Shown: positions 10,857 to 38,332, counted from the first letter of the stretch. The stretch is DNA of 64,000 nucleotides from Dendrobates tinctorius (GCF_039654945.1 NW_027361924.1:4154001-4218000); one strand, 5' to 3'. Notes: generated by a model from the sequence alone, not told the origin. Numbers and translations are program-made.

Positions 10857-10925
10857 CTAAGCATGTCGAGGTGAGGAGACTTAAAGCCGCAATGCTCCTC
10901 TGGGAAATATGCTAATTATGCAAAT
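10857..10925 (-). promoter_or_regulatory. snRNA-type promoter module inside retrozyme A (octamer x2, SPH/ZNF143 site, PSE-like box)
   Basis: Minus strand: ATTTGCAT-A-ATTAGCAT-ATTTCCCAGAGGAGCATTGCGG...CTCACCTCGACATGCTTAG. Confidence 0.6.
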
Positions 10926-11056
10926 TGTCTCTTCAGAGAAGAAGAGGACTAGAACTCTAGTGCCACCTATTGGAGGTAGCAATCCTAAAAGTCAATGTTG
11001 ACCCTTTAACGAGCCTAGTTACATGACTTAGGATAAAAGCCAAGCCAGAATCTCCA

Positions 11057-11101
11057 TTTGCAGACACTGTGTTTCGGGGTACTGCCCCTCATCAGTGCAA
11101 A
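11057..11101 (-). ncRNA. Type I hammerhead ribozyme
   Basis: Minus strand reads UUUGCA-CUGAUGA-GGGG CAGUA CCCC-GAAAC ACAGU GUC-UGCAAA. The core and stems I and II are intact and stem III is short (ACAC A GUGU). Predicted cleavage is after GUC, between 11063 and 11062. Stem I extends with bulges to about 11039/11123. Confidence 0.92.
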
Positions 11102-12554
11102 GTGGGAGAAGATCTGGTTTGGCTGTGAGAGAGGCGTCTGACCGATATCCAAGAAGTATCATTTCTCCTTGCAGAGAATAACATGCTATGAGGGGATGTC
11201 AGGCAACAAATCCCTAAAAACGACTTGTCGTTATCTTAAAGAACATGTATCCTTTCCATAGTATAGATGAAAAACGTTTGATCGTTGGGGGTCCGTCTGC
11301 GGAGTCCACCACCGATTCCAAGACTGGGGGGTCCAAATTTGGTTGTACGGCTAGTGACAGTAGAGCTGTGGTCACTCATTACTTCATCTTTGGACCTTGG
11401 TTCTCATGATCGGTGGTTGTCCCAAAGAAGTGATGCAACTAAACATCAGCGAAAGAAAAACAAGTGCAATATTTGCAAATAATCAATGTGACCACAACAA
11501 ATGTCCCTGATACAGGCAGGAAAGAAAACACTGCAGCGCTAACCATGCAGGACCCCAGAGGTCTAGGGGACAGATTACTCGTCATTCCTCGCAGATTGTT
11601 TTTCTCCAAGTTCTACCTCCAGCAAAGTTTACAGTAATCATTCAGCAAAAAGTGGTGAAAGCAACTGAGCGACACTAATGTGAATATAAAGTGTCAGCAG
11701 CCGGAGACCAGAGACAAACCGGTCCGGACAACCCTATTGTACGCCTGACAGCGGCGGCTACAGAAAGGCAGCAGGTGGAAAGAAGAAGCATTGTTGTGAC
11801 CGGACCGAAGACGCTTTCTGAGAACAGAACCCTTAGAACAATTACAATTAAAAATAAGTAACCCCCCCCCCCATGTGGAAGCGAATTATCAGAGCAGGAG
11901 AGAACCGGCCCTCGCTGAACATAGCAGATTCGCACTGATAAGTGAAATACCAGGTTAATGTATGATCGGTCACCTTGGTCAAAGGGCCGGAAAAATATTG
12001 AGCAAACTGGAGACAAAGGAGGAGGGGAAAATTTTCACTATATACAGAAGTGGAATATTAAAAGAAAAGGATAAATACAGACAGAAAACTAATGTCTTCT
12101 GTGTGAGCAACATAAGGATTACTATGGCGTCGGCCACCAATGACACACAGGAAAAGCAGAGAGGAAGGAAACAATTCACAGCAAATCTCCACCCAAAGCG
12201 AAAAAATTACATCTGCTCATGAGCGGATCAGCGGAGGAAGGACACACGGGACGGAAATCAGGCGGAAGAAATCTGACTCGGATTTTGCAATAAATCTGTA
12301 AAAAAGACAATACCGTAGGAATTACTCATACACAGACACAATAACGAGCCGGTGACACAGCTGGATCTCAAAACACCACAGTTTAGAGGGGGAGACGGCC
12401 GTCAGCCCCCAGAGACAGAGAGCAGATTGACAAGACGTCATACACTGGAAGAGGAGGAAGCTGCCCACAAATATCAGCAGCCCACCTACCATCTACACAT
12501 AGTAAAAAGTACAAAGCGAGGAGCACTGTAAATATCTTATATAGACCTCTATTG

Positions 12555-13987
12555 ATCCGGAGTTACCTCCTTTATTAAACCCCAGAGCTGTACTCACTAT
12601 TCTGCTGGTGCAGTCACTGTGTACATACATTACATTACTGATCCTGAGTTACAGCCTGTATTATACTCCAGAGCTGCACTCACTATTCTGCTGGTGCAGT
12701 CACTGTGTACATACATTACATTACTGATCCTGAGTAACATCCTGTATTATACTCCAGAGCTGCACTCACTATTCTGCTGGTGCAGTCACTGTGTACATAC
12801 ATTACATTACTGATCCTGAGTTACCTCCTGTATTATACTCCAGAGCTGCACTCACTATTCTGCTGGTGCAGTCACTGTGTACATACATTACATTACTGAT
12901 CCTGAGTTACAGCCTGTATTATACCCCAGAGCTGCACTCACTATTCTGCTGGTGCAGTCACTGTGTACATAGATTACATTACTGATGCTGAGTAACATCC
13001 TGTATTATACTCCAGAGCTGCACTCACTATTCTGCTGGTGCAGTCTCTGTACATACCTTACATTACTGATCCTGAGTTACCTCCTGTATTATACTCCAGA
13101 GCTGCACTCACTATTCTGCTGGTGCAGTCACTGTGTACATACATTACATTACTGATCCTGAGTAACATCCTGTATTATACTCCAGAGCTGCACTCACTAT
13201 TCTGCTGGTGCAGTCACTGTGTACATACATTACATTACTGATCCTGAGTTACCTCCTGTATTATACTCCAGAGCTGCACTCACTATTCTGCTGGTGCAGT
13301 CACTGTGTACATACATTACATTACTGATCCTGAGTTACAGCCTGTATTATACCCCAGAGCTGCACTCACTATTCTGCTGGTGCAGTCACTGTGTACATAG
13401 ATTACATTACTGATGCTGAGTAACATCCTGTATTATACTCCAGAGCTGCACTCACTATTCTGCTGGTGCAGTCTCTGTACATACCTTACATTACTGATCC
13501 TGAGTTACCTCCTGTATTATACTCCAGAGCTGCACTCACTATTCTGCTGGTGCAGTCACTGTGTACATACATTACATTACTGATCCTGAGTAACATCCTG
13601 TATTATACTCCAGAGCTGCACTCACTATTCTGCTGGTGCAGTCACTGTGTACATACATTACATTACTGATCCTGAGTTACCTCCTGTATTATACTCCAGA
13701 GCTGCACTCACTATTCTGCTGGTGCAGTCACTGTGTACATACATTACATTACTGATCCTGAGTTACAGCCTGTATTATACCCCAGAGCTGCACTCACTAT
13801 TCTGCTGGTGCAGTCACTGTGTACATAGATTACATTACTGATGCTGAGTAACATCCTGTATTATACTCCAGAGCTGCACTCACTATTCTGCTGGTGCAGT
13901 CTCTGTACATACCTTACATTACTGATCCTGAGTTACCTCCTGTATTATACCCCAGAGCTGCACTCACTATTCTGCTGGTGTAGTCAC
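12555..13987 (+). repeat. 86-bp satellite array with a 428-bp (5-monomer) higher-order repeat
   Basis: Unit CTGCACTCACTATTCTGCTGGTGCAGTCACTGTGTACATACATTACATTACTGATCCTGAGTTACMTCCTGTATTATACTCCAGAG; identical variant blocks recur at 12791, 13219 and 13647. Confidence 0.96.
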
Positions 13988-14424
13988 CAGGGCTGTGGAG
14001 TCGGTAAGCCAAACATGCGACTCCGACTCCAACTCCGATTCCGACTCCACGACTCCGACTCCCACACATATTGCTTATATTTAAGTGAAAAATTTATTGT
14101 AGTACAATGTGAACATCAGACATTTAATCATTTCTATGATCCAAAAATCAAGATATTTAGGTAGAACATAATATCTATTTATTGGAATTCAACTTTAGAA
14201 CACAAAAAAAACTGTAATAAATTGTAAATATGTAATACACTGTATAATATCGATTACATATATACAGTACAGACCAAAAGTTTGGACACACCTTCTCATT
14301 CAAAAAGTTTTCTTTATTTTCATGACTATGAAAATTGTACATTCACTCTGAAGGCATCAAAACTATGAATTACATGTGGAATTATATAATTAAAAAAAAA
14401 GTGTGAAACAACTGAAAATATGTC

Positions 14425-15822
14425 TTATATTCTAGGTTCTTCAAAGTAGCCACCTTTTGCTTTGATTACTGCTTTGCACACTCTTGGCATTCTCTTGATG
14501 AGTTTCAAGAGGTAGTCACCAGAAATGGTCTTCCAACAGTCTTGAAGGAGTTCCCAGAGATGCTTAGCACTTGTTGGCCCTTTTGCCTTCACTCTGCGGT
14601 CCAGCTCACCCCAAACCATCTAGATTGGGTTCAGGTCTGGTGACTGTGGAGGCCAGGTCATCTGGCGTAGCACCCCATCACTCTCCTTCTTGGTCAAATA
14701 GCCCTTACACAGCCTGGAGGTGTGTTTGGGGTCATTGTCCTGTTGAAAAATAATTGATGGTCCAACTAAACGCAAACCGGATGGAATAGCATGCCGCTGC
14801 AAGATGCTGTGGTAGCCATGCTGGTTCAGTATGCCTTCAATTTTGAATAAATCCCCAACAGTGTCACCAGCAAAGCACCCCCACACCATCAAACCTCCTC
14901 CTCCATGCTTCACGGTGGGAACCAGGCATGTAGAGTCCATCCATTCACCTTTTCTGCGTTGCACAAAGACACGGTGGTTGGAACCAAAGATCTCAAATTT
15001 GGACTCATCAGACCAAAGCACAGATTTCCACTGGTCTAATGTCCATTCCTTGTGTTCTTTAGCCCAAACAAGTCTCTTCTGCTTGTTGCCTGTCCTTAGC
15101 AGTGGTTTCCTAGCAGCTATTTTACCATGAAGGCCTGCTGCACAAAGTCTCCTCTTAAGGGTATGTGCACACAGAGTTTTTTGTCTCTGCGGATTTTGTA
15201 GAGAAAACCGCAGGTAGATCAGCAGGACAAAGACCTGCGGTTTATCTGCGGTTTTGCCCTGCGGTTTTACACCTCATAATGGATGAGGTGTAAAACTGCA
15301 GCGTTTCTGCACCAAACAATTGACATGCTGCGTTTTGAAAACCGCAGCAAAACCGCGCGGAAAAAAAACGCAGCATGTGCACAGCTTTTTTTTATTTCCA
15401 TAGGAAATAAAGGTATTGTACAACGCAGCAGAATCTGCTGCGTTTCTGCAGAGCCAAAAACACTGCGGAAACGCAGCAGAAACTACACAGAGTGCACATA
15501 CCCTAACAGTTGTAGAGATGTGTCTGCTGCTAGAACTCTGTGTGGCATTGACCTGGTCTCTAATCTGAGCTGCTGTTAACCTGCGATTTCTGAGGCTGGT
15601 GACCTGGATGAACTTATCCTCCGCAGCAGAGGTGACTCTTGGTCTTCCTTTCCTGGGGCGGTCCTCATGTGAGACAGTTTCTTTGTGGCGCTTGATGGTT
15701 TTTGCCACTGCACTTGGGGACAGTTTCAAAGTTTTCCCAATTTTTCGAACTGACTGACCTTCATTTCTTAAAGTAATGATGGCCACTCGTTTTTCTTTAC
15801 TTAGCTGCTTTTTTCTTGCCAT
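14425..15822 (-). pseudogene. DD38E transposase pseudogene (~349 aa after removing the MITE)
   Basis: MARKKQLSKEK paired-like HTH, GRPR, WSDE, FQQDND and WPPQSPDLNPI*. All pieces lie in one frame; it is disrupted by a 348-bp MITE+TSD and by TAG (14620-14622) at the catalytic Glu. Confidence 0.93.
15159..15503. mobile_element. PIF/Harbinger-type MITE inside the transposase ORF
   Basis: GGGTATGTGCAC...GTGCACATACCC with TAA TSD; removal restores STTVKRRL. Confidence 0.92.
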
Positions 15823-16231
15823 AATACAAATTCTAACAGTCTATTTAGTAGGACTATCAGCTGTGTATCCACCAAACTTCGGCACAACACAACTGATGGT
15901 CCCAACCCCATTTATAAGGCAAAAAATCCCACTTATTAGACCTGACAGGGCACACCTGTGAAGTGAAAACCATTTCCGGTGACTACCTCTTGAAGCTCAT
16001 CAAGAGAATGCCAAGAGTGTGCAAAGAAGTAATCAAAGCAAAAGGTGGCTACTTTGAAGAACCTAGAATATAAGACATATTTTCAGTTGTTTCACACTTT
16101 TTTGCTAATTATAAAATTCCACATGTGTTAATTCACAGTCTTGGTGCCTTCAGAGTGAATCTACAATTTTCATAGTCATGAAAATAAAGAAAACTCTTTG
16201 AATGAGGTGTGTCCAAACTTTTGGTCTGTAC

Positions 16232-16286
<55 letters not shown>

Positions 16287-16353
16287 TATACACACACACA
16301 TACATACACACACACTATGACTTATCTCAGCTAAGCCAAACCCTAGATCCTCA

Positions 16354-16921
16354 GGCTACATTCACACTATGGGCGTAGCCAGGATCAAACCTGGGGGGGG
16401 GGGGGGGGCAGAACCTCATGCTGTTCCGCAGAATTTCATACTGCACACCTCAGCTGCTGCAGAACCTCATACTGCACACCTCAGCTGCTGCAGAACCTCA
16501 TACTGCACACCCCTACCCTTGAAAATAAAGCCTGCACCTTAGGTAGATGTGGTGGTGAATGCAATCTATTTATTCCAACTATCAATTAATGTTGATGTGT
16601 TACTGAAAACGAGCAATGCCTGTCCTGGGCGTCCTTTTGGGCAGCTATGAGGTGTCCCTGACTGGTGCTAAAAAAAAAGGAGTGTTAGTCTGTGTGCTAC
16701 GAGGCTTTCATTCTTTTTGGTACAGATATGATATGGATACAGATATGGATAAATGGATATATAGATAGCAAAAGCAGATTAGAAATCTGCTCTATTGAAA
16801 ACATTATCTATGAGCTCAAAAACCTTTCAGGTCATGCAGTTTTTTTAAAAAGCTGATCTGCTTTTGCAACTGAAAAACATTCTCAAAATACGCAGGAAAA
16901 ACGCTGTGTGTGAATGTAGCC
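16354..16921. mobile_element. PIF/Harbinger-type MITE (older, composite)
   Basis: GGCTACATTCACAC...GTGTGAATGTAGCC flanked by TCA/TTA. Confidence 0.75.
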
Positions 16922-17112
16922 TTAGATCAGGAATAGAACAGTCATTTATAGGACATTTCATAACTTTCCCAAATTCCTATGAAAAAATATTCAGTATATT
17001 CTGCATTGAACTACTGTACCCAATTTATTATATATTTTAGGAGTCGGAGTTGGTCCATTTTATACCGACTCCAACTCCACCAAAATGAGCACCGACTCCG
17101 ACCACAGCCCTG

Positions 17113-17960
17113 GTAGTCACTTTGTACATACATTACTGATCCTGACTTACCGCCTGTATTATACCCCAGAGCTGCACTCACTATTCTGCTAGTGCAGTCA
17201 CTGTGTACATACATTACTGATCCGGAGTTACCTCCTGTATTATACTCCAGAGCTGCACTCACTATTCTGCTGGTGCAGTCACTGTGTACATACATTATAT
17301 TACTGATCCTGAGTTACCTCCTGTATTATACCCCAGAGCTGCACTCACTATTCTGCTGGTGCAGTCACTGTGTACATACATTACATTACTGATCCTGAGT
17401 TACCTCCTGTATTATACCCCAGAGCTGCACTCACTATTCTGCTGGTGCAGTCACTGTGTACATTACATTACTGATCCTGAGTTACATCATGCATTATACT
17501 CCAGAGCTGCACTCACTATTCTGCTGGTGCAGTCACTGTGTACATACATTACATTACTGATCCTGAGTTACATCATACATTATACTCAAGAGCTGCACTC
17601 ACTATTCTGCTGGTGCAGTCACTGTGTACATACATTACTGATCCCGAGTTACCTCCTGTATTATACTCCAGAGCTGCACTCACCATTCTGCTGGTGCAGT
17701 CACTGTGTACATACATTACATTACTGATCCCGAGTTACCTCCTGTATTAAACCCAGAGCTGCACTCACTATTCTGCTGGTGCAGTCACTGTGTACATACA
17801 TTACTGATCCTGAGTTACATCCTGTATTATACTCCAGAGCTGCACTCACTATTCTGCTGGTGCAGTCACTGTGTACTTACATTACATTACTGATCCTGAG
17901 TTACATCCTGTATTATACTCCAGAGCTGCACTCACTGTGTACCTACATTACCATATTACT
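17113..17960 (+). repeat. 86-bp satellite array (continuation after the hAT insertion; 81/86-bp units)
   Basis: Resumes in register after the TSD. Confidence 0.95.
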
Positions 17961-18726
17961 TGGTCCTGGCTGATCATCCCCGGCTTATTTTCAGTCTGAT
18001 CTCGGGATGGGTCTTAGGGTAGGAGCAGCTGCAGCACATCAGACATCCTCCTGAATAATACATTTGTATCCTGATGTCAGACTATGACACAAGGATGAAA
18101 CGCGAGCTATAAAGAGGGTTTGCAAAGAAAATATTGAAATCACCTGTCAGACAAACAAATCTCTACAGAAGTGCTGGTCGTGTACAGGAAAGGCAGGGGT
18201 CTGGGCTACAGCCACAGAGACGGGACCTATCATTACACTGTAGGCAGTCTGGACTCTGAGACATCGGAGCACAGACTAGCACTCTAGAGCTCAGCAGCGC
18301 CCGGCATCCGATGTGACACGCACTGCATTTCCTGTGGTACATTACGTACCATGGAAAAAAAACGTGACATGTTCCGACAGAAACAACAAAATTGAGGCCC
18401 AAGTGTCAGTAATGAACCTTCTGGTCCATGAATAGAAAACCAGGACCGACGAGCGAAATGATATATACACAAACAGGGAGGAAGGAGAGGGGGCCGGAAG
18501 ATGGTTTATTTTGCAATATTTGTAGTCTCCGTTCACTTGGAGATTGTCCAAAACAGGAACAGAAAACAAAAAAGAAAAAAAAAAAAAAAAAAAATCACAG
18601 AAGGAAGCAGAAAATAACACGAGGTCCATTGTACAGGGCGAGGGGAGGTCAGAGTCAAAAATATACAATAAATACAGAACAGGATGAGCCAGAGACGTGT
18701 GCTCTACAGCACAAGAAGTCACATGG

Positions 18727-18944
18727 ACACCAGCAGAATAGTGAGTGCAGCTCTGGAGTATAATACAGGATGTAACTCAGGATCAGTAATGTAATGTATG
18801 TACACAGTGACTGCACCAGCAGAATAGTGAGTGCAGCTATGGGGTATAATACAGGATGTAACTCAGGATCAGTAATGTAATGTATGTACACAGTGACTGC
18901 ACCAGCAGAATAGTGAGTGCAGCTCTGGAGTATAATACAGGATG
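18727..18944 (-). repeat. 86-bp satellite, opposite orientation, 5' of the Tx1 insertion
   Basis: CACCAGCAGAATAGTGAGTGCAGCTC... units ending in ATACAGGATG. Confidence 0.93.
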
Positions 18945-21900
18945 CTCCTGTTCCCGGGGCCCCTCTGTCCCGCTGTGTGAAACCCGCTACCCACCCCGGC
19001 TCGGGCCCTGTGGTGGGTCCGCAGCGAGGGAGCGGGGAGAGAGATGACTGTTGTGACCTGACTGTCGCATCTGGTGACAGTTCAGACCAGGGAAGTGACA
19101 TGGAGGTCGGTGCTGGTTGTGGTCTTGGTGGTGGTGTCCAGGCTCAGCCCTCGGTGGCAGGGGGGGCTGGTCTGGCACCAGGTAAAGTTGGTACAGCCAG
19201 GGCCGCACCTCCGGCGGCGAGTGCTGGGGCTTCTGGACCCCCACGTACGGATCCGCTAAGTCTGGATCGCTAGTGGGGGTCCAGAAGCCTAGGAAGGGTG
19301 AACAGAACACCAAGCAGCAGCTGAGGCAGTGCAAAGTGCTGGTCGCTCCCATGTCGGCGCCTGTGGTGAAAGCGGGGTCTCCGGCACGTCGACCCAAAAA
19401 GGGGTCCGTGCAGGGGGCTCCGCCGCCGCTAGGCGACGAAGGGGAGTGGCCGGCCTTGCCTGACTCAAGTGGTGGACATAGGGTGGCGGCGGTGGTCCGT
19501 GAGGGGGGCGTGGCCTCCCCGAGTGTTGCCCGGCCTGCAAAGGCTGCGGCATGCGCGGGGGGGGGGGGGCGTGTCCTCCTCGGCCGTCGTCCCACCCGCT
19601 GCGTCCGTGTTACCCGGGGGGGGGGGGGGGGGCGTGGCCTCGCAAGGGGTCACTGCTCTGCCCGTGGTGGCCTTGACTGGTCGCGTCACCCGAGGGGCCG
19701 CGGCTCTGCCTGGGGTGGCTGCGACCGGCGGGGGGGGGGGTGGGGGTTTCGCGGCCACCCACCCTTCCAAGTAATGCTGTGCTGCCCCCAAAAGCTGGTG
19801 GGGAGTTGTCGGGGTTCCCGGTCCACCTACCTTCATCTGAGGGTGCGGGGACTCTGGCGCTCCCTGGCAAGCCGGCGGCGGGGGTGAAGAAAAGTGCAGG
19901 GCAGGGAGTGGTGCCAGTGGCCGTCCCTGCCCAGAGTAATGAAAGCTCAGCAAAAGAAAAAAAAAAAAATGGAGCTGAAACCAGGAGCTGCTGTTGCTCC
20001 TAGGCCCAGCCAGGGCAGTGTGCAGGATGTCATCAGCACTGAGGCATTTAAAGGGGCAGCGGCGCTCCTGGACAGGAGCTGGAGTAGCTCCCAGCAAGAG
20101 AGCTCGGGGCCCCCAGCAGGCAAAGAGAGGAACTGCACTGGTTCAGGAAAAGTAAATAATGTAAATAATATTGCTATGTACACCAATTGTTCGAGTGAGA
20201 ACGAAAGCGGAGTGGACATATTTAAGGAGATGTTTGCTGAAGTGAATGGTGATATGAGTGACATGGATGAGGGAGTGAGTGCTAGTGTGAATTTGGGTGA
20301 AAGTGCTGGAGTGAATGCTGGGGTGAAAGCAAATAATAGAAGAGTGAATGGGAGAGTGACTGGGAGGACGAATGAGGGTGCTGGCACAAGTGGTGGGATT
20401 TCCTCGCCTCCGGGCTCCAGGGACGGCGTTTCGCACTGCCGTTTCCTGGAGGCTCTCAAAAGGGGAGATAGATCAATAGTGGTAGAGGGGAGGACAGTGG
20501 ACTTGTCTTTCTGGATAGAGAGACACGGCTTTGCTGCCTTCCAAAATCAAAGGGAGGGAGGGACTGTTTGGTCTCTCCCCACAGCCGGGCAGGGGCCGCC
20601 AAGAAGGAATGTGGTCCGTCTTAGGTGGGGGGGGGCAGTGAAGCTTTCCCACCTAGGAGCAAGGTAGTGGAGCTCCTCCTTAAGATGAGCTTTGGGGCGA
20701 ATGACATCTTTGCCCTGATACATCCTTCGGCGTCCAGCTTCTTCGACATCAGCTTTGTGCGGCCAGAGGGGCTTGAGCTCTTCTGGTCGAATTACGAGCT
20801 GGTGCGAGAAGAGCCCGGATGGCGAGACTTCGTGGCTCAAGCGGTGTCTCGCCAAAATTCCGTCAAGCGAGTGACCATGGTTACATGTAATGAGTCACTC
20901 GCAGGCGTGGACATCATGACGTGGCTTTCCCGTTACGGGGAGGTCACCGAGGTCCCAAAAAAGAACAGGGACGAGTTCGGCATCTGGTCGGGGGGGGGGG
21001 GGGCTGGACCTTCATGGTCAAATTGAAGGTTTCCAGCGGCACGGTCACCCACATCCCTTCCTCTGCGTTCCTGGGAAGGGACAGGATCCTGGTCTTCTAC
21101 CAGGGGCAATCGAAGGTCTGCCAGAAGTGCGGCGACCCCACCCACTTCAGCGCCAACTGCAAGGTGTAGAAGTGCGCATTGTGTGATGGGGTGGGTCACC
21201 TGGCCGCCTTGTGTAAGGATACTCGGTGCCACCTGTGTGGTGACCTAGGTCACCCTCTCAGCCGCTGCCCTCGCTCTTTCTCTAATGCCGCCGCAGGCCC
21301 GGTGGGGGGAGACCGTGGGGGGGCAACCCCCGGTGGCGCTTCTGCTGTGACAGGTGGTGGCGGAAGGGCTGAGGGGCCAGTGAGGAAGGGCAATGCTGCA
21401 AGGGGCCCCGCGTACCAGCGGAGGCAGGAAAAGCGCCAGGGAGGTAAGGGACAGGTGGAGCCTCGGGCCACCGGGGTGATGCCTGCTCCTCCCTCCAGGC
21501 CCGTGGCCAAAGCCTCTGAGGCCCTGGGGGAGAGTGCGGTGAGTGAGGAGATCAAGAGGATGGAGAGAGAGGAGAAAGCGGCTGACTCAGACGACTCCTC
21601 TCGTTATGAAAGTGTCGACGAGGATGTCAGAGAGCAGCCTACAGCATCAGGTGGCAAAACCAGGCGTGCCAAGCGCAAAACGGGGGGGGGGGGTGGAGAA
21701 TGCTGACAAGCCTTCAAAGTCTCCCCCGCCCCCGACCACCAGGGTGCACACGGATCAGACTCTCCAACTGGTTCAGCGCCCTCGGAGGTTCAGATGATGA
21801 GCCGCAAGACGAGGGTGCGGGGTCAACACTGGAGGGTCCTTCAGGGGATGGCGGAGTCCATCCCTCAGGGGGAACTGTTCCTCCTGAGGGGGGGACAGAC

Positions 21901-22051: not shown

Positions 22052-25000
22052 TGGCTGAACTCGCCCCGTTGACGCTGGCGTCCATTAATGTCGCCAGCAT
22101 TAAGTCAGATGCGGCTCGCTTCACGGCCTTTGATTTTTTTCTCCCGGATTGAGGCAGAAATTTTATTCTTGCAAGAGACCAGACTAACAGACATGGGGGC
22201 CATCTATAAAGCACAGAGGGAGTGGAGGTGCGGGCCCTCATACTGGTCTCTTGCGGCCGAGCCGTATAGCGGGGTGGCTTTTAAGACTGCAGCTGTTGAA
22301 TGCTGACGGGTTACTGAGTTGGAAATGGGGAGGTGCCTGATCCGTCTTCATGAGAGGACAAGAGCTCCGGCTCATCAACATCTACGGCCCGCAATCCAAG
22401 TGGGACCACAAATGTCTCTTCCTGAGGATCAAGCCCTTTCTTTTTATGAGCCGGCAGGTGGTCTTCGGTGGGGACTTCAACACCATTACGAGGTCCCGTG
22501 ACCGGGGGGGTCCCGGAGATCGCCTGGCTTATGATAGCGTTGCGTTGAATAGCATAGCCAGTGAAGCTCGCCTGGTGGATGTCCATATCCGGCACACCCC
22601 AGGTCACGGGGGTTTCACCTACCATAGGGGTAGCAGTAGGTCTAGAATAGACAGGTTTTTTTTGAAGGAGGACGCCATCTTTTCTGCTGTGTCCGCCGTT
22701 GAGGTGGAGTTCTCGGACCATTGTTTAATTTTCTTTTCTCTGAATGTTGCAGAGACTCCTCGGATGGGAAGAGGGCTGTGGAAGCTCAATTCGTCCCTGC
22801 TGGAAGAAGCGGAGGTGAGACAATCCTTCGAGGATTTTCTTCAGAGCCAGGTACCGCTGTTGGATCTCTGTAGTAGTAAGTCAGAGTGGTGGGAGATTTT
22901 CAAAAAGCGGGTGGCGGGGTTCTTCCGTCAGCTCTCGAGCCTCAGGAGTCTGAACAGGCACCGCTTGTACCAGGCCCTGGGGAGGAAACTCGAGCAGCTT
23001 GTCTCGACTGGAGGTGACCGTGAGGAAATCTCCAGAGTGAAATCTTTACTCAAGAGGTGTCAGTATGATAAACACACATCTTTGGTTTTTGAGAGGGACT
23101 TCGGGAAGTACCGCTCGCCCGACCCTTACAGAAACTGTAAGATGTCAGTGAATTGTAAGATGGTGACAGGACTGATCGACAGTACGGGGTCCCTGAACAG
23201 ATCCAAATCAGGGATCCTGGAGGTGGTCAGATCCTTCTACTCACAACTCTTGGAAAAGAAGGATCTGGATCAGGACAGGATGTCGGCTTTCCTGGCTGAA
23301 ACCGTCCCTGAGCCAGGGGGTGATCCCTCTCTTGGTGTTTTGGCAAAAGAAATCAGGGAAGAGAAGTGAGACTGGCCATTGATGGGCTTCGGCCCAAGAA
23401 ATCGCCAGGTCCGGATGGCTTAACATCCGAGTTCTAAAAGACTTTTAGGGACTCCTTGGTCCCCCTCTTGACAGGGGTATTTAATGAGTGTCTATCCTCG
23501 GGCACTCTTCCCGACTCAATGAGGAAGTCAGCCCTCATTATTCTGTCAAAGGGTAAGGATCCGTCCCGTATCGAGAATTGGCGTCCCATAGCGCTTCTCG
23601 ATACGGACCGGAAGGTTCTGGCCAAGGTGCTGTTTAATCGGCTGGTGAAGTTTGCACCCCGGCTCCTTTCAGGGGCCCAGCATTGCTCTGTTCCAGGCCG
23701 CAGTACTTCTAGTGCTGTGCTCGGTGTCCGAGAGGCAGTGGAGCAGGGTAGGGCAGGTCACTGGAGGGGGTACTTGCTGTCATTAGATCAAGCGAAAGCC
23801 TTTGACCGGGTCAACCACGAGTACCTCTGGTCCGTCCTTTTGGGAGGTTTGTAAAATGGTTAGCGATCTTGTACCAAGGGGCTGACTTTTCCGCTGGTGA
23901 ACGGTTGGTCAGGTCACCCTTTTGAGGTGGGTTCTGGGGTCCGTCAGGGCTGTCCGCTGAGCCCGCTTTTATACGTGTTCGCGATCGATCCCTTCCTAAG
24001 GAGGGTAGATCGTGGACCGTTGGCAGGAGTCGGGATGGACCAGGCGGGCTCTGGGTCCTCTCTGAGGGTGGTGGCGTACGCCGATGATGTTTCCCTTTTC
24101 GTGTCCTCGAGAGGGGAGGCGGATTGGGTCATGTCGGAGGTAGTGCGCTACCCGGAGGCATCCGGGTCCATGATCAACCAGGATAAGTGTGAAAGTCTCT
24201 GGCTGGGAGGGGGAGATCCCAGGTTTGATCTCCCGGACACCCTTCCAGGGCCCCAGGCCACCGCCAAAATTCTAGGCATCGAATTTGGCCCCGGGGATTA
24301 CCCCCAGCAAAATTGGGAGGGCAGACTTAAGATCGCCACCCAAAAGGTGGACCAATGGAAGGGTTGGTCTTTAACCCTGAGGGAAAGGGTTGCCCTGGCT
24401 AAAGGCTTTCTGCTACCTTTATTAATATACCTGGGCAGTGTGTGCATCTTGCTGGAACCTCTCTGGACACGAGTCTATAGCCTGTTCTTCCAATTGTTAT
24501 GGGGGAATAGGCTTAACCTAATCAAGAGGGAGGTTACATACCGTACGAGGAGACTAGGCGGGTTGGGTATGGTCAACCCGGTGGTGTTTCTAGTAAACAC
24601 CTTTCTTAAGACTAACATCTCCAACCTCTGGCTAGAGAGGGCTCCTCCGTGGGTAGTCTCCTGCAAGGGTTGGCTTTGGCCTTTCTTCCAGGAATGGGAG
24701 ACAGGAGGGCAGGTGAAGGACCTACGCACACCTCAAGGCATCTCCCGGCTTACGCTACCCCGGTTCTGAAGGTGATCCGCCGGTGGGGTCTGGGAATTTG
24801 GGAAATCAGGACCATGTCGAGGCAATGCCTTGACAGGAGGGTCCTGTTGACCCATTTCCAGAAGCCCCTGGCCCTTAAGGATTGCCCAGGCCGGGATCTG
24901 GAGGTCGGGCTGGGGCTTTTAAATTCTAAGCGGATCCCCATGAAGTTTTGGGACTTGACCTGGCGTTGCTTCCACGGGAGGCTGTATGTAAAGGATAACT

Positions 25001-25413
25001 TGAAGTGCAGGAAATCCGATGATCGGGGTTGTCCCCGTGAGGAGTGTGGCGACGTGCTGGAAAGCATGGAGCACTTCCTGCTTCAGTGTCCCTTTAATGC
25101 AGAGGTGTACAACAGGGTGGGTGCTTCCATACGTTGGCCGCGGCTGGCGTCCCTCTCCTACGCTGAGTGGGCCTATGGAGCGTTCAGATCCCTGGGTGGC
25201 CGGGACCCGTGCACTTTATTCCTAGTCAGTGTAGTGGTTAGGTTCTACACTTGGAATGCACGGTGCCTAGTTTTGACGCGGAAAAAAACCCTCCCAAGGG
25301 ATGAGGTGGTAGGAAACATCTTGGGTGACCTGGTGAAGGTCTGTTCTTTGGAGTTCGAAAGGTTGGGTGTGAGGAAGGCCTCTTGGCTTTGGAGAGGCCT
25401 CTCCTTTGAATGA
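22048..25413 (+). pseudogene. Tx1 ORF2 (APE endonuclease - reverse transcriptase - CCHC), frameshifted
   Basis: LASINV, LQET, GGDFN, RIDRF, FSDH; KSPGPDG, NWRPIALL, LDQAKAFD, GVRQGCPLSP, YADD; CPREEC...HFLLQC. Confidence 0.93.
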
Positions 25414-28560: not shown

Positions 28561-28858
28561 GGGGAGCACAACACGGAGATGGACCAAGGTGCTCCGGAAC
28601 CCCCACCATGCGCACGATATAACTCGTCACATGACTGCTATATATATTATATATAAAATGATGTAACCAATGTGTGGGCAGAGATGGATAGAGGCGCAGG
28701 ACACACGCTGCCTGATGATAACAGGTAGCACCGGACACGTGACCAGGGATGTCAGGCTGATAACTGACACAGGGACCGCGGCTCCTGCACCTCACACTCC
28801 GCGGCCCTGACACACGTGAGGTAAAGAGATGAGGGCGTCGTGCGTTTCCAGCAGTTAC

Positions 28859-29060
28859 CTGTCCCCCGGCCCTCCTGTGACCTCAGCACCGCCGCTCCCG
28901 GTCCCCGGTCTCAGCCTCCTCTCACTTGCTTTGCTTTCAGACACTGAAAATGGCGGCGCCGCAAAAGCCTGGCGAGCACCGAAAGCATCAATCGAAGCCC
29001 AGACTTTGCCCTGTGCCCCCCTTCTCATCCGCCCATGTCTGTGACGTCACCCGGCAAGAG
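28859..29060 (-). promoter_or_regulatory. CpG-island promoter and putative non-coding first exon of an unidentified minus-strand gene
   Basis: CRE TGACGTCA (29042-29049); YY1 motif GCCGCCATTTT (28947-28957, minus strand); splice donor GACAG|GTAACT at 28859/28858. Confidence 0.55.
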
Positions 29061-29246
29061 AATGTCAATGACAGGGAGGCGAAGAGATGGGGATCGCCGA
29101 GCGCATCGATCTGTCAGCGCAATCTGACTCTACAGGCAGCAAATAACTGTACAGAGGGGAAAAAAGTCCGAAATGTGTGATATATACCTGCCCTGTGCGA
29201 CCGGGAACACCGCTACTAACGGCTGCTGCACACGTCACACAGGCTG

Positions 29247-32200
29247 CATTATAGCAGGTATATTCCTGTACATAGGGGGCAGTATTATAGTAGTTATATT
29301 CTTGTACATAGGAGCAGTATTATAGTAGTTATATTCTTGTACATAGGGGCAGTATTATAGTAGTTATATTCTTGTACATAGGGGCAGTATTATAGTAGTT
29401 ATATTCTTGTACATAGGAGGCAGTATTATAGTAGTTATATTCTTGTAGATAGGAGCAGTATTATAGTAGTTATATTCTTGTACATAGGGGCAGTATTATA
29501 GTAGTTATATTCTTGTACATAGGGGCAGTATTATAGTAGTTATATTCTTGTACATAGGAGGCAGTATTATAGTAGTTATATTCTTGTACATAGGGGCAAG
29601 TATTATAGTAGTTATATTCTTGTACATAGGAGCAGTATTATAGTAGTTATATTCTTGTACATAGGGGGCAGTATTATAGTAGTTATATTCTTGTACATAG
29701 GGGCAGTATTATAGTGGTTACATTCTTGTACATAGGAGCAGTATTATAGTAGTTATATTCTTGTACATAGGGGGCAGTATTATAGTAGTTATATTCTTGT
29801 ACATAGGGGGCAGTATTATAGTAGTTATATTCTTGTACATAGGGGCAGTATTATAGTAGTTATATTCTTGTACATAGGGGGCAGTATTATAGTAGTTATA
29901 TTCTTGTAGATAGGAGCAGTATTATAGTAGTTATATTCTTGTACATAGGGGGCAGTATTATAGTAGTTATATTCTTGTACATAGGGGGCAGTATTATAGT
30001 AGTTATATTCTTGTACATAGGGGCAGTATTATAGTAGTTATATTCTTGTACATAGGGGGCAGTATTATAGTAGTTATATTCTTGTAGATAGGAGCAGTAT
30101 TATAGTAGTTATATTCTTGTATATAGGAGCAGTATTATAGTAGTTATATTCTTGTACATAGGGGGCAGTATTATAGTAGTTATATTCTTGTACATAAGGG
30201 GCAGTATTATAGTAGTTATATTCTTGTACATAGGGGCAGTATTATAGTAGTTATATTCTTGTACATAGGGGCAGTATTATAGTAGTTATATTCTTGTACA
30301 TAGGGGCAGTATTATAGTAGTTATATTCTTGTACATAGGGGGCAGTATTATAGTAGTTATATTGTACATAGGAGCAGTATTATAGTTATATTCTTGTACA
30401 TAGGGGGCAGTATTATAGTAGTTATATTCTTGTACATAGGGGGCAGTATTATAGTAGTTATATTCTTGTACATAGGGAGCAGTATTATAGTAGTTATATT
30501 CCTGTACATAGGGGGCAGTATTATAGTAGTTATATTCTTGTACATAGGGGCAGTATTATAGTAGTTATATTCTTGTACATAGGGGGCAGTATTATAGTAG
30601 CTATATACTTGTACATAGGGGCAGTATTATAGTAGTTATATTCTTGTACATAGGGGGCAGTATTATAGTAGTTATATTCTTGTACATAGGGGCAGTATTA
30701 TAGTAGTTATATTCTTGTACATAGGGGGCAGTATTATAGTAGTTATATTCTTGTAGATAGGAGCAGTATTATAGTAGTTATATTCTTGTATATAGGAGCA
30801 GTATTATAGTAGTTATATTCTTGTACATAGGGGGCAGTATTATAGTAGTTATATTCTTGTACATAAGGGGCAGTATTATAGTAGTTATATTCTTGTACAT
30901 AGGGGCAGTATTATAGTAGTTATATTCTTGTACATAGGGGCAGTATTATAGTAGTTATATTCTTGTACATAGGGGCAGTATTATAGTAGTTATATTCTTG
31001 TACATAGGGGGCAGTATTATAGTAGTTATATTGTACATAGGAGCAGTATTATAGTAGTTATATTCCTGTACATAGGGGGCAGTATTATAGTAGTTATATT
31101 CTTGTACATAGGGGCAGTATTATAGTAGTTATATTCTTGTACATAGGGGGCAGTATTATAGTAGCTATATACTTGTACATAGGGGCAGTATTATAGTAGT
31201 TATATTCTTGTACATAGGGGGCAGTATTATAGTAGTTATATTCTTGTACATAGGGGCAGTATTATAGTAGTTATATTCTTGTACATAGGGGGCAGTATTA
31301 TAGTAGTTATATTCTTGTAGATAGGAGCAGTATTATAGTAGTTATATTCTTGTACATAGGGGGCAGTATTATAGTAGTTATATTCTTGTACATAGGGGGC
31401 AGTATTATAGTAGTTATATTCTTGTACATAGGGAGCAGTATTATAGTAGTTATATTCCTGTACATAGGGGGCAGTATTATAGTAGTTATATTCTTGTACA
31501 TAGGGGCAGTATTATAGTAGTTATATTCTTGTACATAGGGGGCAGTATTATAGTAGTTATATTCTTGTACATGGGGCAGTATTATAGTAGTTATATTCTT
31601 GTACATAGGAGCAGTATTATAGTAGTTATATTCTTGTACATAGGGGCAGTATTATAGTAGTTATATTCTTGTACATAGGGGCAGTATTATAGTAGTTATA
31701 TTCTTGTACATAGGGGGCAGTAATATAGTATATATTCTTGTACATAGGGGCAGTATTATAGTAGTTATATTCTTGTACATAGGAGCAGTATTATAGTAGT
31801 TATATTCTTGTACATAGGGGCAGTATTATAGTAGTTATATTCTTGTAGATAGGAGCAGTATTATAGTAGTTATATTCTTGTATATAGGGGGCAGTATTAT
31901 AGTAGTTATATTCTTGTACATAGGGGGCAGTATTATAGTAGTTATATTCTTGTAGATAGGAGCAGTATTATAGTAGTTATATTCTTGTAGATAGGGGCAG
32001 TATTATAGTAGTTATATTCTTGTACATAGGGGCAGTATTATAGTAGTTATATTCTTGTACATAGGGGCAGTATTATAGTAGTTATATTCTTGTACATAGG
32101 GGCAGTATTATAGTAGTTATATTCTTGTACATAGGGGCAGTAATATAGTATATATTCTTGTACATAGGGGCAGTATTATAGTAGTTATATTCTTGTACAT

Positions 32201-34640
32201 AGGGGCAGTATTATAGTAGTTATATTCTTGTACATAGGGGCAGTATTATAGTAGTTATATTCTTGTACATAGGGGCAGTATTATAGTAGTTATATTCTTG
32301 TACATAGGGGGCAGTAATATAGTATATATTCTTGTACATAGGGGGCAGTAATATAGTATATATTCTTGTACATGGGGCAGTATTATAGTAGTTATATTCT
32401 TGTACATAGGAGCAGTATTATAGTAGTTATATTCTTGTACATAGGAGCAGTATTATAGTAGTTATATTCTTGTATATAGGGGGCAGTATTATAGTAGTTA
32501 TATTCTTGTACATAGGGGGCAGTATTATAGTAGTTATATTCTTGTAGATAGGAGCAGTATTATAGTAGTTATATTCTTGTAGATAGGGGCAGTATTATAG
32601 TAGTTATATTCTTGTACATAGGGGCAGTATTATAGTAGTTATATTCTTGTACATAGGGGCAGTATTATAGTAGTTATATTCTTGTACATAGGGGCAGTAT
32701 TATAGTAGTTATATTCTTGTACATAGGGGGCAGTAATATAGTATATATTCTTGTACATAGGGGCAGTATTATAGTAGTTATATTGTTGTACATAGAGGCA
32801 GTATTATAGTAGTTATATTCTTGTACATAGGAGCAGTATTATAGTAGTTATATTCTTGTACATAGGAGCAGTATTATAGAAGTTATATTCTTGTACATAG
32901 GGGCAGTATTATAGTAGTTATATTCTTGTACATAGGAGCAGTATTATAGTAGTTATATTCTTGTACATAGGGGCAGTATTATAGTAGTTATATTCTTGTG
33001 CATAGGGGGCAGTATTATAGTAGCTATATTCTTGTACATAGGGGCAGTATTATAGTAGTTATATTCTTGTACATAGGAGCAGTATTATAGTAGTTATATT
33101 CTTGTACATAGGAGCAGTATTATAGTAGTTATATTCTTGTACATAGGGGCAGTATTATAGTAGTTATATTCTTGCACATAGGGGGCAGTAATATAGTATA
33201 TATTCTTGTACATAGGGGCAGTATTATAGTAGTTATATTGTTGTACATAGAGGCAGTATTATAGTAGTTATATTCTTGTACATAGGAGCAGTATTATAGT
33301 AGCTATATTCTTGTACATAGGGAGCAGTATCATAGTAGTTATATTCTTGTACATAGGGGCAGTATTATAGTAGTTATATTCTTATACATAGGAGCAGTAT
33401 TATAGTAGTTATATTCTTGTACATAGGGGCAGTATTATAGTAGTTATATTCTTGTACATAGGGGCAGTATTATAGTAGTTATATTCTTGTACATAGGGGC
33501 AGTATTATAGTAGTTATATTCTTGTACATGGGGGCAGTATTATAGTAGTTATATTCTTGTACATAGGAGCAGTATTATAGTAGTTATATTCTTGTACATA
33601 GGAGCAGTATTATAGTAGTTATATTCTTGTACATAGGGGGCAGTATTATAGTAGCTATATTCTTGTACATAGGGGGCAGTATTATAGTAGCTATATTCTT
33701 GTACATAGGAGCAGTATTATAGTAGTTATATTCTTGTACATAGGAGCAGTATTATAGTAGTTATATTCTTATACATAGGAGCAGTATTATAGTAGTTATA
33801 TTCTTATACATAGGAGCAGTATTATAGTAGTTATATTCTTGTACATAGGGGGCAGTATTATAGTAGCTATATTCTTGTACATAGGAGCAGTATTATAGTA
33901 GTTATATTCTTGTACATAGGGGCAGTATTATAGTAGTTATATTCTTGTACATAGGAGCAGTATTATAGTAGTTATATTCTTGTACATAGGGGCAGTATTA
34001 TAGTAGTTATATTCTTGTACATAGGAGCAGTATTATAGTAGTTATATTCTTGTACATAGGGGCAGTATTATAGTAGTTATATTCTTGTACATAGGAGCAG
34101 TATTATAGTAGTTATATTCTTGTACATAGGGGGCAGTGTTATAGTAGTTATATTCTTGTATATAGGGAGCAGTATTATAGTAGTTATATTCTTGTACATA
34201 GGAGCAGTATTATAGTAGTTATATTCTTGTACATAGGGGGAGTATTATAGTAGCTATATTCTTGTACATAGGAGCAGTATTATAGTAGTTATATTCTTGT
34301 ACATAGGGGCAGTATTATAGTAGTTATATTCTTGTACATAGGAGCAGTATTATAGTAGTTATATTCTTGTACATAGGGGGCAGTGTTATAGTAGTTATAT
34401 TCTTGTATATAGGGAGCAGTATTATAGTAGCTATATTCTTGTACATAGGGGGCAGTATTATAGTAGCTATACTCTTGTACATAGGGGGGCAGTATTATAG
34501 TAGTTATACTCTTGTACATAGGAGCAGTATTATAGTAGTTATACTCTTGTACATAGGAGCAGTATTATAGTAGTTATATTCTTGTATATAGGGGCAGTAT
34601 TATAGTAGCTATATTCTTGTACATAGGAGCAATATTATAT
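29247..34640. repeat. 5.4-kb 35/36-bp minisatellite array
   Basis: About 150 units of AGTATTATAGTAGTTATATTCTTGTACATAGGRGC. Confidence 0.98.
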
Positions 34641-34675
34641 TGGATTTTTTGAACTTGGGTTGAGTTGGCCTTTTA

Positions 34676-34863
34676 GGCCAGGGTCACACTTGCGTGTGCA
34701 ATGCGAGAAAGTCCTGTGAGTCTCGCATCTTAATACTCGGGACCGGAGTGTGCGGCCGCATGTATTTCTATGCAGCTGACCGCTCTGGTCCCGAGTGCCG
34801 GTGACAGTGTTGGGTATTGAGACACAAGACTCATGCGAGTTTCTCGCAAGTGTGTCCCCGGCC
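34676..34863. mobile_element. Harbinger-type MITE
   Basis: TTA|GGCCAGGGTCACACTTGCG...CGCAAGTGTGTCCCCGGCC|TTA. Confidence 0.85.
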
Positions 34864-35589
34864 TTATAATCATGTCCTGCCTAGCTTGTTACACCTGTAT
34901 GTGGATCTGTGTAGTATATATGAAGGTAATGCTGGTGTCTACACACAGCTGTGGTGCTTCCCACAGGGTGCAGGTTAGAGTTATCTGGTCTTTGACTGGC
35001 AGAGTTATCGTGGCAGCCATTATGATGATGAAATATCAATTACCACACTCTATATAAGGATTTTGCATGATTTATTAAAGTCAGTGGATATGTCAGAATT
35101 CTAAGATGTGCTCTAATAACAGCATATAGTTGACTAGTGTACAATGACTGATAACACCTCTATATACATTAGATAACACAGTATCCACCATTCACAATAG
35201 TTGATATCACAGCTCACCTCCTCCTCCTCCTGTACAATGACTGATAATTCCTCTATAAACAGTAGATAACACAGGATCCACCATTCACAATAGGCGATGT
35301 AACAGCTCACCTCCTCCTGTATAATGAGTCTAGTATTAGACTTAGTTACTAGTGTGAAAATTGCAAGCTTTCTTCGTGTGGCCCTTCGCTCAGAGTCCTC
35401 CAGGCCTCGGACCCCATGCCATCTTCCAGGTGCTGTTTTGGCTTCTTTTGGTCTTTCGACAGCAAAACTTTGTAGGCGGCACAGCGACATCATCGCTCCA
35501 CCTGCTTGACGGAGCATCGCCACATTGAATTTTACCTTCATTTTAAATATTATTCTCATCTTCATAGATGTTGATGGATAGTGCGTGTA

Positions 35590-35915
35590 AAAACAAGCAC
35601 TTTTGCAATTCACTTTTTGTTAAAAATTTTGCAGCCGTTCTTGACATATTAACACTTTTCCTGTTTCCAGTTTGTTGCCTTGGAGACCGACCACCGCTGT
35701 TATCTGGCTGAAGCTGTTCAGGATTCGCAGGCAACAGCGGTCTCCAGTGATCCTGACCAGTTTTAAAACAGCGCTGACAAGCTCAATAGAAGAGAGCTTG
35801 TAAGTGGTGTTCTCATGTTTGCCTGTCTAGCAGCGGTGGTCGGTGTCCAAGGAAAGAAGCATCAAATAAAGTGTTAATATCTCAAGAACGGCTGGAAACT
35901 GTACTATTTACAAGC
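35590..35915. mobile_element. Degenerate palindromic MITE related to 58187-58476
   Basis: Shared GCAGCCGTTCTTGA(C/G)ATATTAACACTTT and its inverted AAAGTGTTAATATCTCAAGAACGGCTG. Confidence 0.6.
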
Positions 35916-36178
35916 TCTATCTGACAATATCCATCTATGAAGAGCACTTCCATCAAAGGAGAACATGCTCTAGTGGGAGGTATGTGCGCCTCGCGGAAAA
36001 ACGTGCTGTAGCCACTGATCTGTGGATGGTCGGGTTCTGAAACCCCGTGTGATGCCCTTAGCTTGTCCTTGGAGAGCGATGCTCGGACATATAAACTAAC
36101 TTTAGAAAGTCTGTATTTTTATAAAGTTTAGTTATCCTGAGATTTATGAAAAAAAAGTGTAAAAATAAAATGTAGTCT

Positions 36179-36195
36179 GCACTGCCCCCTGCTGG
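36179..36195 (-). promoter_or_regulatory. Candidate CTCF site
   Basis: Minus strand CCAGCAGGGGGCAGTGC matches the CTCF core. Confidence 0.5.
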
Positions 36196-37994
36196 ATAAA
36201 TTCATGTATAGCAGCACACAGATTGGTTTCTATGGGTTGCTCATCCACTTTTCCTTTCAATGGTTTTGATAATGTGACTGATACTGTTTGTTGTCAGGGG
36301 AACTGTGTTTGCCCTGCGTTGTCACGGTAACCACATTTCCTGGGATATGGGTTGTCAGAGATACTGCTTTGGTTCTGAAACACAGGTTGTCAGGGTTACT
36401 GCCTCTGTCCAGGGAGCTAGGTTGTCAGGATTATAACCTCTGTCCTGAGGCATAGGTTGTCAGGGTAGCTGCCTTGGTCCTGGGAAACAGGTTGTCAAAA
36501 TTACTGCCTCAGTCCTTCGACAAAGGTTGTCAGGGTTACAGCACCATCCTGCGACTAAGGTTGTCAGGGTTACCACCCCTGTCCTGTGACTAAGGTTGTC
36601 AGGGTTACCGCCCAATTATGTGACTAAGGCTGTCAGTGTTACGGCCCCGTTCCTGTGAGTAAGGTTGTCAGGGTTACCGCCCCTGTCCTGTGAGTAAGGT
36701 TGTCAGGGTTACCGCCCCGTCCTGTGACTAAGGTTGTCAGGGTTACCGCCCAATTATGTGACTAAGGCTGTTAGGGTTACGGCTCCATTCCTGTGAGTAA
36801 GGTTGTCAGGGTTACCACCCCTTCCTGTGACTAAGGTTGTCAGAGTTACCTCCTCTGTCCTGTGACTAAGGTTGTCAGGGTTACCGCCTCTGTCCTGTGA
36901 CTAAGGTTGTCAGGGTTACCGCCCAATTATGTGACTAAGGCTGTCAGGGTTACGGCTCCGTTCCTGTGAGTAAGGTTGTCAGGGTTACCACCCCTTCCTG
37001 TGACTAAGGTTGTCAGAGTTACCTCCTCTGTCCTGTGACTAAGGTTGTCAGAGTTACCGCCTCTGTCCTGTGACTAAGGTTGTCAGAGTTACCTCCTCTG
37101 TCCTGTGACTAAGGTTGTCAGAGTTACCGCCTCTGTCCTGTGACTAAGGTTGTCAGAGTTACCGCCTCTGTCCTGTGACTAAGGTTGTCAGGGTTACCGC
37201 CTCTGCCCTGTGACTAAGGTTGTCAGAGTTACCGCCTCTGTCCTGTGACTAAGGTTGTCAGAGTTACCGCCTCTGTCCTGTGACTAAGGTTGTCAGAGTT
37301 ACCGCCTCTGTCCTGTGACTAAGGTTGTCAGGGTTACCGCCTCTGTCCTGTGACTAAGGTTGTCAGGGTTACCGCCTCTGTCCTGTGACTAAGGTTGTCA
37401 GAGTTACCGCCTCTGTCCTGTGACTAAGGTTGTCAGAGTTACCGCCTCTGTCCTGTGACTAAGGTTGTCAGAGTTACCGCCTCTGTCCTGTGACTAAGGT
37501 TGTCAGAGTTACCGCCTCTGTCCTGTGACTAAGGTTGTCAGAGTTACCGCCTCTGTCCTGTGACTAAGGTTGTCAGAGTTACCGCCTCTGTCCTGTGACT
37601 AAGGTTGTCAGGGTTACCGCCTCTGTCCTGTGACTAAGGTTGTCAGAGTTACCGCCTCTGTCCTGTGACTAAGGTTGTCAGAGTTACCGCCTCTGTCCTG
37701 TGACTAAGGTTGTCAGAGTTACCGCCTCTGTCCTGTGACTAAGGTTGTCAGGGTTACCGCCTCTGCCCTGTGACTAAGGTTGTCAGGGTTACCGCCTCTG
37801 CCCTGTGACTAAGGTTGTCAGGGTTACCGCCCCTGTCCTGTGACTAAGGTTGTCAGGGTTACCACCCCTGTCCTGTGACTAAGGTTGTCAGGGTTACCAC
37901 CCCTGTCCTGTGACTAAGGTTCCCCGGGAAGGAACAACCACGGAAAGGGCAGTCTCCAATGAAGGAAACCACCTATGCCAAAACATGGTATCCA

Positions 37995-38038
37995 TCCACA
38001 GACAGCTGTTTCGGGGTATTGCCCCTCATCAGTGTGGA
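37995..38038 (-). ncRNA. Type I hammerhead ribozyme (intact core)
   Basis: Minus strand UCCACA-CUGAUGA-GGGG CAAUA CCCC-GAAACAGCUGUC-UGUGGA; palindromic stem III ACAGCUGU; predicted cleavage between 38001 and 38000. Confidence 0.92.
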
Positions 38039-38332
38039 GTAGGAAACTGGCCAGTAGGAGCAATGCCTAGTAAAAGACTGTGAAAATGAGGATGAGTGAC
38101 CTCATGGAGATCAACATCCAACACTGCGGAGACACCATCACATGTTTCTCAACGCAGTGATTCTAGAGCAATGCCCCCATCCCTTATGGGAAATATGCAA
38201 AACATGCAAAACAGAAGCCGCGGAGACACCATCACATGTTTCTCAACGCAAGCAATGACCAGCGAGGTCATTCATTCATCCTCATCTTCACAGTCTTTTA
38301 CTAGGCATTGCTCCTACCAGCCAGTTTCCTAC

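Follow-up and report, generated by a model that had tools for sequence, protein, structure and literature searches.

Background

Newt satellite 2, an amphibian repeat with a hammerhead ribozyme, owes its transcription to RNA polymerase II (Pol II; PMC6765202), and the passages of PMC2220036 that cite Coats, Zhang & Epstein (1994) describe its promoter as being of the small nuclear RNA (snRNA) type; a first-pass annotation of the DNA studied here had drawn on this precedent, and both citing sources support it. That DNA, hereafter the window, is a stretch of 64,000 nt of Dendrobates tinctorius and holds one insertion of each of two hammerhead repeat families, A and B, which are compared in this work. 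Both carry, besides the ribozyme, a short block made of octamers and a neighbouring TTTCCCA motif. We report that this block is a second conserved module beside the ribozyme, its position being kept in the two copies compared, and we weigh the possibility that it belongs to a promoter.

Related elements have been described in other amphibians. The non-LTR (long terminal repeat) retrozymes of Xenopus are non-coding hammerhead units of about 316 bp, which occur as many dispersed monomers and are related to Penelope pseudo-LTRs (bioRxiv 10.64898/2026.07.22.740005). A Penelope pseudo-LTR contains a start site and an internal promoter, and integration of the Penelope type is marked by units in partial tandem, by an adjoining inverted copy that is truncated and by simple repeats as the site of insertion (PMC8557442). 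As to the motifs of the block, an octamer together with a Staf/ZNF143 site is the usual composition of the snRNA distal element, and here the literature agrees with what the first-pass annotation had assumed (PMC3499247, PMC2811027). The name SPH stands for "SphI postoctamer homology", and SPH sites require their CCCA core (PMC3282657, PMC2811027).

A block conserved between the two units

Units A and B were rebuilt in the sense of the ribozyme and rotated to begin after the cleavage site, before positions and alignments were compared. The hammerhead was removed from both, and the significance of the best local alignment was assessed using 2000 dinucleotide shuffles as the null. The best alignment between A and B was the block, with a score of 20; the shuffled sequences scored 9.9±1.3 with a maximum of 17, and none of the 2000 reached 20. 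A blastn comparison of A with B matched the units in two places and nowhere else: over 28 nt in the hammerhead and over 24 nt, at 87.5%, in the block. The identity between the units was the same for the two elements, 81%, over 26 nt for the block and over 47 nt for the hammerhead. The segments before and after the block had a best local score of 8, equal to the shuffled mean, and a global identity of 0.49 versus 0.50-0.51 in shuffled sequences, and no similarity above chance was detected between A and B other than the hammerhead and the block. The statement that these two are essentially all that can be aligned between the families is thus confirmed by the shuffle test, by blastn and by the random level of identity elsewhere.

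The placement of the block is also shared. Counted from the cleavage site, it starts at nt 138 in A and 141 in B, its TTTCCCA motif at nt 156 and 159, and a TCAC further along at nt 189 and 192, respectively. Since the two copies agree in order, in orientation and in how far the block lies from the cleavage site, the notion of two conserved modules, ribozyme and block, holds for this pair. The motifs were located as follows, in coordinates of the window:

10918-10925: perfect octamer ATGCAAAT of A (ribozyme strand ATTTGCAT), with a single T between it and ATGCTAAT
10909-10916: octamer variant ATGCTAAT of A, 9 bp start-to-start from the perfect octamer
10901-10908: TGGGAAAT of A (ribozyme strand ATTTCCCA), core of a candidate SPH/Staf-type site
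10889-10895: GCAATGC of A, followed by TCCTC; as CGCAATGC at 10888-10895 (ribozyme strand GCATTGCG), it fits the 3' half of a Staf site and lies 1 nt too distant from the core
10876-10863, minus strand: CTCACCTCGACATG of A, a weak motif resembling a proximal sequence element (PSE)
38204-38211 and 38195-38202: octamer variants of B, arranged as ATGCAAAA C ATGCAAAA, 9 bp start-to-start, each matching the octamer at 7/8 positions
38187-38194: TGGGAAAT of B (ribozyme strand ATTTCCCA)
38168-38174: GCAATGC of B (ribozyme strand GCATTGC), 12 bases before TGGGAAAT, its distance from the TTCCCA core exceeding that of a canonical Staf site by 8 nt

Read on the ribozyme strand, the order is the same in A and B: octamer, octamer, ATTTCCCA, GCATTGC. 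The orientation of the block relative to the ribozyme is also equal, because the intact hammerhead cores of both copies lie on the minus strand. The GCAT half is constant in all four octamers, variation being confined to the A/T half, and one octamer (ATGCAAAT) is perfect. Motifs, order, 9-bp octamer spacing and orientation were read at both loci as the first-pass annotation had given them. For GCAATGC that annotation had offered no explanation; the motif agrees with the 3' half of the Staf consensus. The Staf consensus used for scoring is said to go back to Schaub et al. in 1997, and the PSE consensus was the mammalian one.

Combinations of these motifs are rare in the window. The pattern TGGGAA N0-12 ATGCWAAW matched at these two loci only in the 64 kb, for 0.01 matches expected, and so did GCAATGC N3-16 TGGGAA, for 0.02 expected. 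The perfect octamer alone is not enriched (2 found versus 2.5 expected in the 64-kb window), gapped Staf sites are common by chance and the PSE-like motif is weak, so that the statistical weight comes from the conservation between A and B and not from the motif matches.

Other sequence collections were also searched. Scanned with the hammerhead core, metagenome contigs yielded no further frog copies, the sole match being a bacterial or phage hammerhead, and viral contigs yielded no match. Scanned with the block, prokaryote genomes gave a single chance match, in a Clostridia metagenome-assembled genome (L002), and viral contigs gave none. A protein route to more copies, in which a spurious open reading frame (ORF) common to both arms of B served as query, returned no match. 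The metagenome hammerhead, located among bacterial or phage-like genes (contig L001, 1579-1601), has a core with an identical helix II (GGGGCAGTACCCC) and is unrelated to the frog repeats.

The two insertions and their ribozymes

The insertions that carry the block are composed as follows:

10818-11187, minus strand: copy A, an insertion of 370 bp (1.12 units) in which a 329-nt unit is extended by 41 nt of terminal redundancy, seen as a direct repeat at 329-bp spacing
10808-10817 and 11188-11197: target duplication of copy A, 10 bp, ATGAGGGGAT, the flanks being read directly
11095-11063, minus strand: hammerhead A, with CTGATGA, helix II GGGG/CCCC, GAAAC, ACAGT and GTC; cleavage after 11063
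37922-38508: copy B, a 587-bp insertion in a 35-bp satellite (36384-39431)
37910-37921 and 38509-38520: target duplication of copy B, 12 bp, GTGACT[A/T]AGGTT
38272 to 37922, minus strand: full unit of copy B, 351 nt, bearing the block
38273-38508, plus strand: partial unit of copy B, inverted and 5'-truncated, without the block
38032-38001, minus strand: left hammerhead of B, with an intact core and a helix III of 2 bp closed by the palindromic loop AGCT
38339-38370, plus strand: right, inverted hammerhead of B, with core C3 changed to T (TTGATGA) and no block of its own
38126-38156 and 38220-38250: perfect 31-nt direct repeat flanking the block of B, its copies 94 bp apart, with an inverted copy at 38471-38501; it may belong to the unit of the family or be a local duplication

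The hammerheads of A and B are of type I, with a helix I of 5-6 bp (TTTGCA/TGCAAA in A), a helix II of GGGG/CCCC and the CUGANGA, GAAAY and RUH elements by which hammerheads are recognised in the field (PMC4209133; PMC7229834). Rfam, searched at the gathering threshold and at E<=1, returned neither a hammerhead nor any other RNA family at either locus, and the hammerhead call is for that reason made from the core and the helices only. The right hammerhead of B, to judge from its altered core, is presumably inactive. With lengths of 329 nt (A) and 351 nt (B) and short ORFs only, both units fall within the range of about 170-400 nt of the non-coding non-LTR retrozymes and amphibian satellite-2-type repeats. 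Neither locus holds a tandem array whose units, joined head to tail, each carry a hammerhead, A amounting to 1.12 units and B to one unit plus an inverted partial. In Xenopus such families are reported to include dispersed monomers, so that A and B are derived copies rather than active arrays. That their block adds a case to the promoter-bearing hammerhead repeats of amphibians, a kind already known, is in part supported.

Both insertions share hallmarks of Penelope-type integration, A through its partial tandem and B through its inverted 5'-truncated copy within the 35-bp satellite. GAGGTCA, a microhomology of 7 nt, marks the junction between the full and the inverted unit of B. Among the eight ORFs scanned in the window, none showed a Penelope reverse transcriptase or a GIY-YIG domain. 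The right part of copy B (38211-38510) is bounded by 63-nt terminal inverted repeats and resembles a snap-back product. In copy A, positions 10919-10925 of the octamer (ATTTGCA) are complementary to the helix I strand TGCAAAT just past the cleavage site (11056-11062), a relation that is not kept in B. The 3' end of copy A lies 57-58 nt downstream of CTCACC, approximately at the position of a PSE-directed start, since a PSE is expected about 55 bp upstream of the start site; no such relation exists in B, and it may be a coincidence.

The block as a possible part of an snRNA-type promoter

We give about even chances to a reading in which the block acts at the level of DNA, as a landing pad for transcription factors, and supplies the enhancer part of an snRNA-type Pol II promoter located inside the repeat, a kind that newt satellite 2 possesses and that the promoter-bearing pseudo-LTRs of Penelope-like elements lead one to expect. 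In such a promoter, the two Oct-1-type octamers, 9 bp apart, and the directly following ATTTCCCA, a Staf/ZNF143 (SPH)-type core on the ribozyme strand, would bind their factors. In tandem or dimeric copies, the ribozyme strand would then be transcribed under the control of the block, and transcription would run into the hammerhead 160-180 nt downstream. After self-cleavage (as a dimer) and circularisation, the RNA would return to the genome through a Penelope-type reverse transcriptase. We infer that factors bind, which polymerase acts, where transcription starts and in which direction it runs; the snRNA type, the identity of the SPH and PSE motifs, self-promotion and a homology to satellite 2 of urodeles are inferences as well.

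Of the elements of a SNAPc-dependent promoter of the snRNA type, octamers are present in both units, as ATGCAAAT and ATGCTAAT in A and as two copies of ATGCAAAA in B. As in the distal elements of snRNA genes and of type-3 RNA polymerase III (Pol III) genes, they adjoin a candidate Staf/ZNF143-type site, and the compact layout beside a TCACC-type element recalls the human H1 RNA promoter. In the full unit of copy B, the block stands upstream of the intact hammerhead, and in a tandem or circular arrangement it would lie about 160-180 nt upstream of the next CTGATGA on the ribozyme strand. An internal promoter or enhancer is the most economical reading of the block and is in part supported, by resemblance.

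Several observations weigh against the snRNA-type reading. The Staf/ZNF143 site with canonical spacing (18-19 bp) is absent from the window: the assignment as SPH made in the first-pass annotation extends to the TTCCCA core only, the GCATTGC 3' half being 1 nt (A) or 8 nt (B) too distant, and gapped matches to the degenerate Staf consensus occur on average 1.5 times per shuffled window. The PSE-like motif that the annotation had noted downstream in A is present, but it is weak and, beyond TCAC, not common to B: CTCACCTCGACATG fits the mammalian PSE consensus at TCACC and a few further positions, the motif is nearly absent from B, and TCAC alone is shared, 33 nt past the start of TTTCCCA in both units. 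No TATA box was found. The spacing from octamer to TCAC, about 50 nt, is far below what the usual position of a distal element, -250 to -170, would give. In these respects (non-canonical Staf spacing, unconvincing PSE, lack of a TATA box), as well as in its location inside a mobile repeat and not upstream of a gene, the block differs from the distal elements of snRNA and type-3 Pol III promoters. Metazoan retrozymes, moreover, seem to lack promoters and to rely on read-through according to a 2020 review (PMC7761336). Copy A in its inserted form has the block on the downstream side of its sole hammerhead; the description of the element as self-promoting does not apply to this copy, and self-promotion would for that reason require at least two units. 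Finally, since each family has a single insertion in the window, "conserved" means here a comparison of two sequences.

Alternative explanations

The block could have been kept for a role in the RNA, as a binding site for a reverse transcriptase, a ligase or a host protein, or as a structural element. It does lie within the transcribed unit and the retrotransposed RNA, retrozyme RNAs are known to require host and retroelement proteins, and in both units the octamer pair can form a small hairpin through its TGCA palindromes. However, such hairpins are predicted to be weak and are a trivial outcome of a repeated TGCA palindrome; folded as a circle, the block takes part in weak local hairpins only, with no long-range pairing partner common to A and B. 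The three sub-motifs, in addition, each match well-known DNA sites and are arranged as in snRNA enhancers. We therefore regard an RNA role as unlikely, although it fares best among the alternatives.

Less probable still is a promoter or enhancer of another kind, either an octamer-dependent Pol II promoter of the mRNA type, like those of histone H2B and immunoglobulin genes, or an enhancer active in both directions, which would yield antisense RNA as well. The lack of a convincing PSE common to A and B speaks for it, as does the fact that the block does not fix the transcribed strand, because elements of the distal type are orientation-independent. Upstream of the 5' end of copy A as inserted, TTTAAG is found at a distance of about 25 nt and the octamers at about 50-67 nt. 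B, on the other hand, reads TCTAGA at the corresponding position, which is not TATA-like; where the template is circular or multimeric, the resulting insertion does not necessarily have its 5' end at a start site; and the urodele precedent is of the snRNA type.

Equally improbable is a block without function of its own, acquired through recombination or gene conversion between the families or from a recent common Penelope pseudo-LTR segment. In its favour, only two copies are compared, transposable elements are often mosaic, and the perfect 31-nt direct repeats on either side of the block of B point to recent rearrangement. Against it, the sequences on both sides of the block match no better than random ones, yet the distance from cleavage site to block differs by no more than 3 nt; long divergence under constraint fits this pattern better than a recent swap, and an identity of only 81% argues against a fresh transfer.

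Comparison with other self-cleaving repeats

An snRNA-type promoter in A and B would have its closest precedent in newt satellite 2. The likeness extends to the host group, a repeat length of about 330 bp and a type I hammerhead, as well as to a very short helix III with a palindromic loop, which is found in B. Coats, Zhang and Epstein are said, in 1994, to have included octamers among the internal promoter elements of newt satellite 2. Unlike that urodele tandem satellite, A and B are dispersed single or inverted insertions in a frog genome, and whereas promoter function was demonstrated for newt satellite 2 by oocyte injection, the frog block is known from its sequence.

The axolotl retrozymes Rtz353 and Rtz330 (Cervera & de la Pena 2020, PMC7229834) are similar to A and B in unit length (330-353 nt) and in having a type I hammerhead, active as a dimer. 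On the ribozyme strand of the axolotl clone Ax353, TTTCCCAGAA, TTTTGCAT and TCTCACCCTAAGT are found about 150-107 nt upstream of the cleavage site (PMC7229834 supplement). The TCACC-type motif of Ax353 is much closer to the PSE consensus than its frog counterpart. The order in Ax353 is SPH-like motif then octamer, versus octamers then SPH-like motif in A and B, and the distances to the cleavage site differ. The comparison with the axolotl clones, made by eye, thus revealed the same motifs in another order, with no similarity above the chance range of shuffles. A 13/14 match to Ax353 (CAGAGGAG[A/C]ATTGC), also found by eye, was rejected as falling inside that range. Octamer and SPH motifs go unmentioned in the axolotl paper, whose authors do not discuss promoters (PMC7229834), and in the Xenopus preprint (bioRxiv 10.64898/2026.07.22.740005); nor are they described in the work on Penelope-like elements (PMC8557442).

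The Sm-alpha repeats of schistosomes (PMC6765202, PMC2220036) offer a more remote parallel, as self-cleaving repeats with a promoter of their own that remain competent only with two or more units in tandem. Their promoter, unlike the block of A and B, is a tRNA-like internal Pol III promoter and is not octamer-based, and they belong to another phylum and another element family.

Other features of the window

The window consists mostly of minisatellites (10-3124, 8244-9143, 29248-34639, 12553-13987 and 17125-17936), among them a 37-bp array of about 87 copies, a 35-bp unit present in two arrays, one of them with 153 copies, and an 86-bp unit found at six places in both orientations. Four further features were recorded:

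15274-15822, minus strand: helix-turn-helix (HTH) domain of a Tc1/Sleeping-Beauty-like transposase
22350-25413, plus strand: long interspersed nuclear element (LINE) with endonuclease, reverse transcriptase and zf-RVT
52872-55070, minus strand: uninterrupted ORF of 732 aa with a Folliculin-family domain (Pfam E 1.7e-08), which may be a large exon or the retrocopy of a host gene
59857-61918, plus strand: LAP2alpha-like ORF, followed by a reverse transcriptase fragment

Implications

Extended to frogs and salamanders together, the snRNA-type reading leads to a broader and more tentative proposal, which we hold possible rather than probable: amphibian non-LTR retrozymes may be autonomous transcription units whose second module under selection, next to the hammerhead, would be a compact snRNA-type Pol II promoter that depends on Oct-1 and ZNF143 and derives from Penelope pseudo-LTRs. 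Two views of the transcription of animal retrozymes have so far stood apart, the promoter-less read-through view (PMC7761336) and the older work on the snRNA-type promoter of the newt, and the frog block links both. Being short and defined, it offers a target for mutation, oocyte injection and chromatin immunoprecipitation (ChIP). If the proposal is true, the block would account for the high expression of circular RNA and for the need for tandem copies, and, contrary to the current view of retrozymes, these RNA circles would hijack the snRNA transcription machinery of their host rather than depend on read-through.

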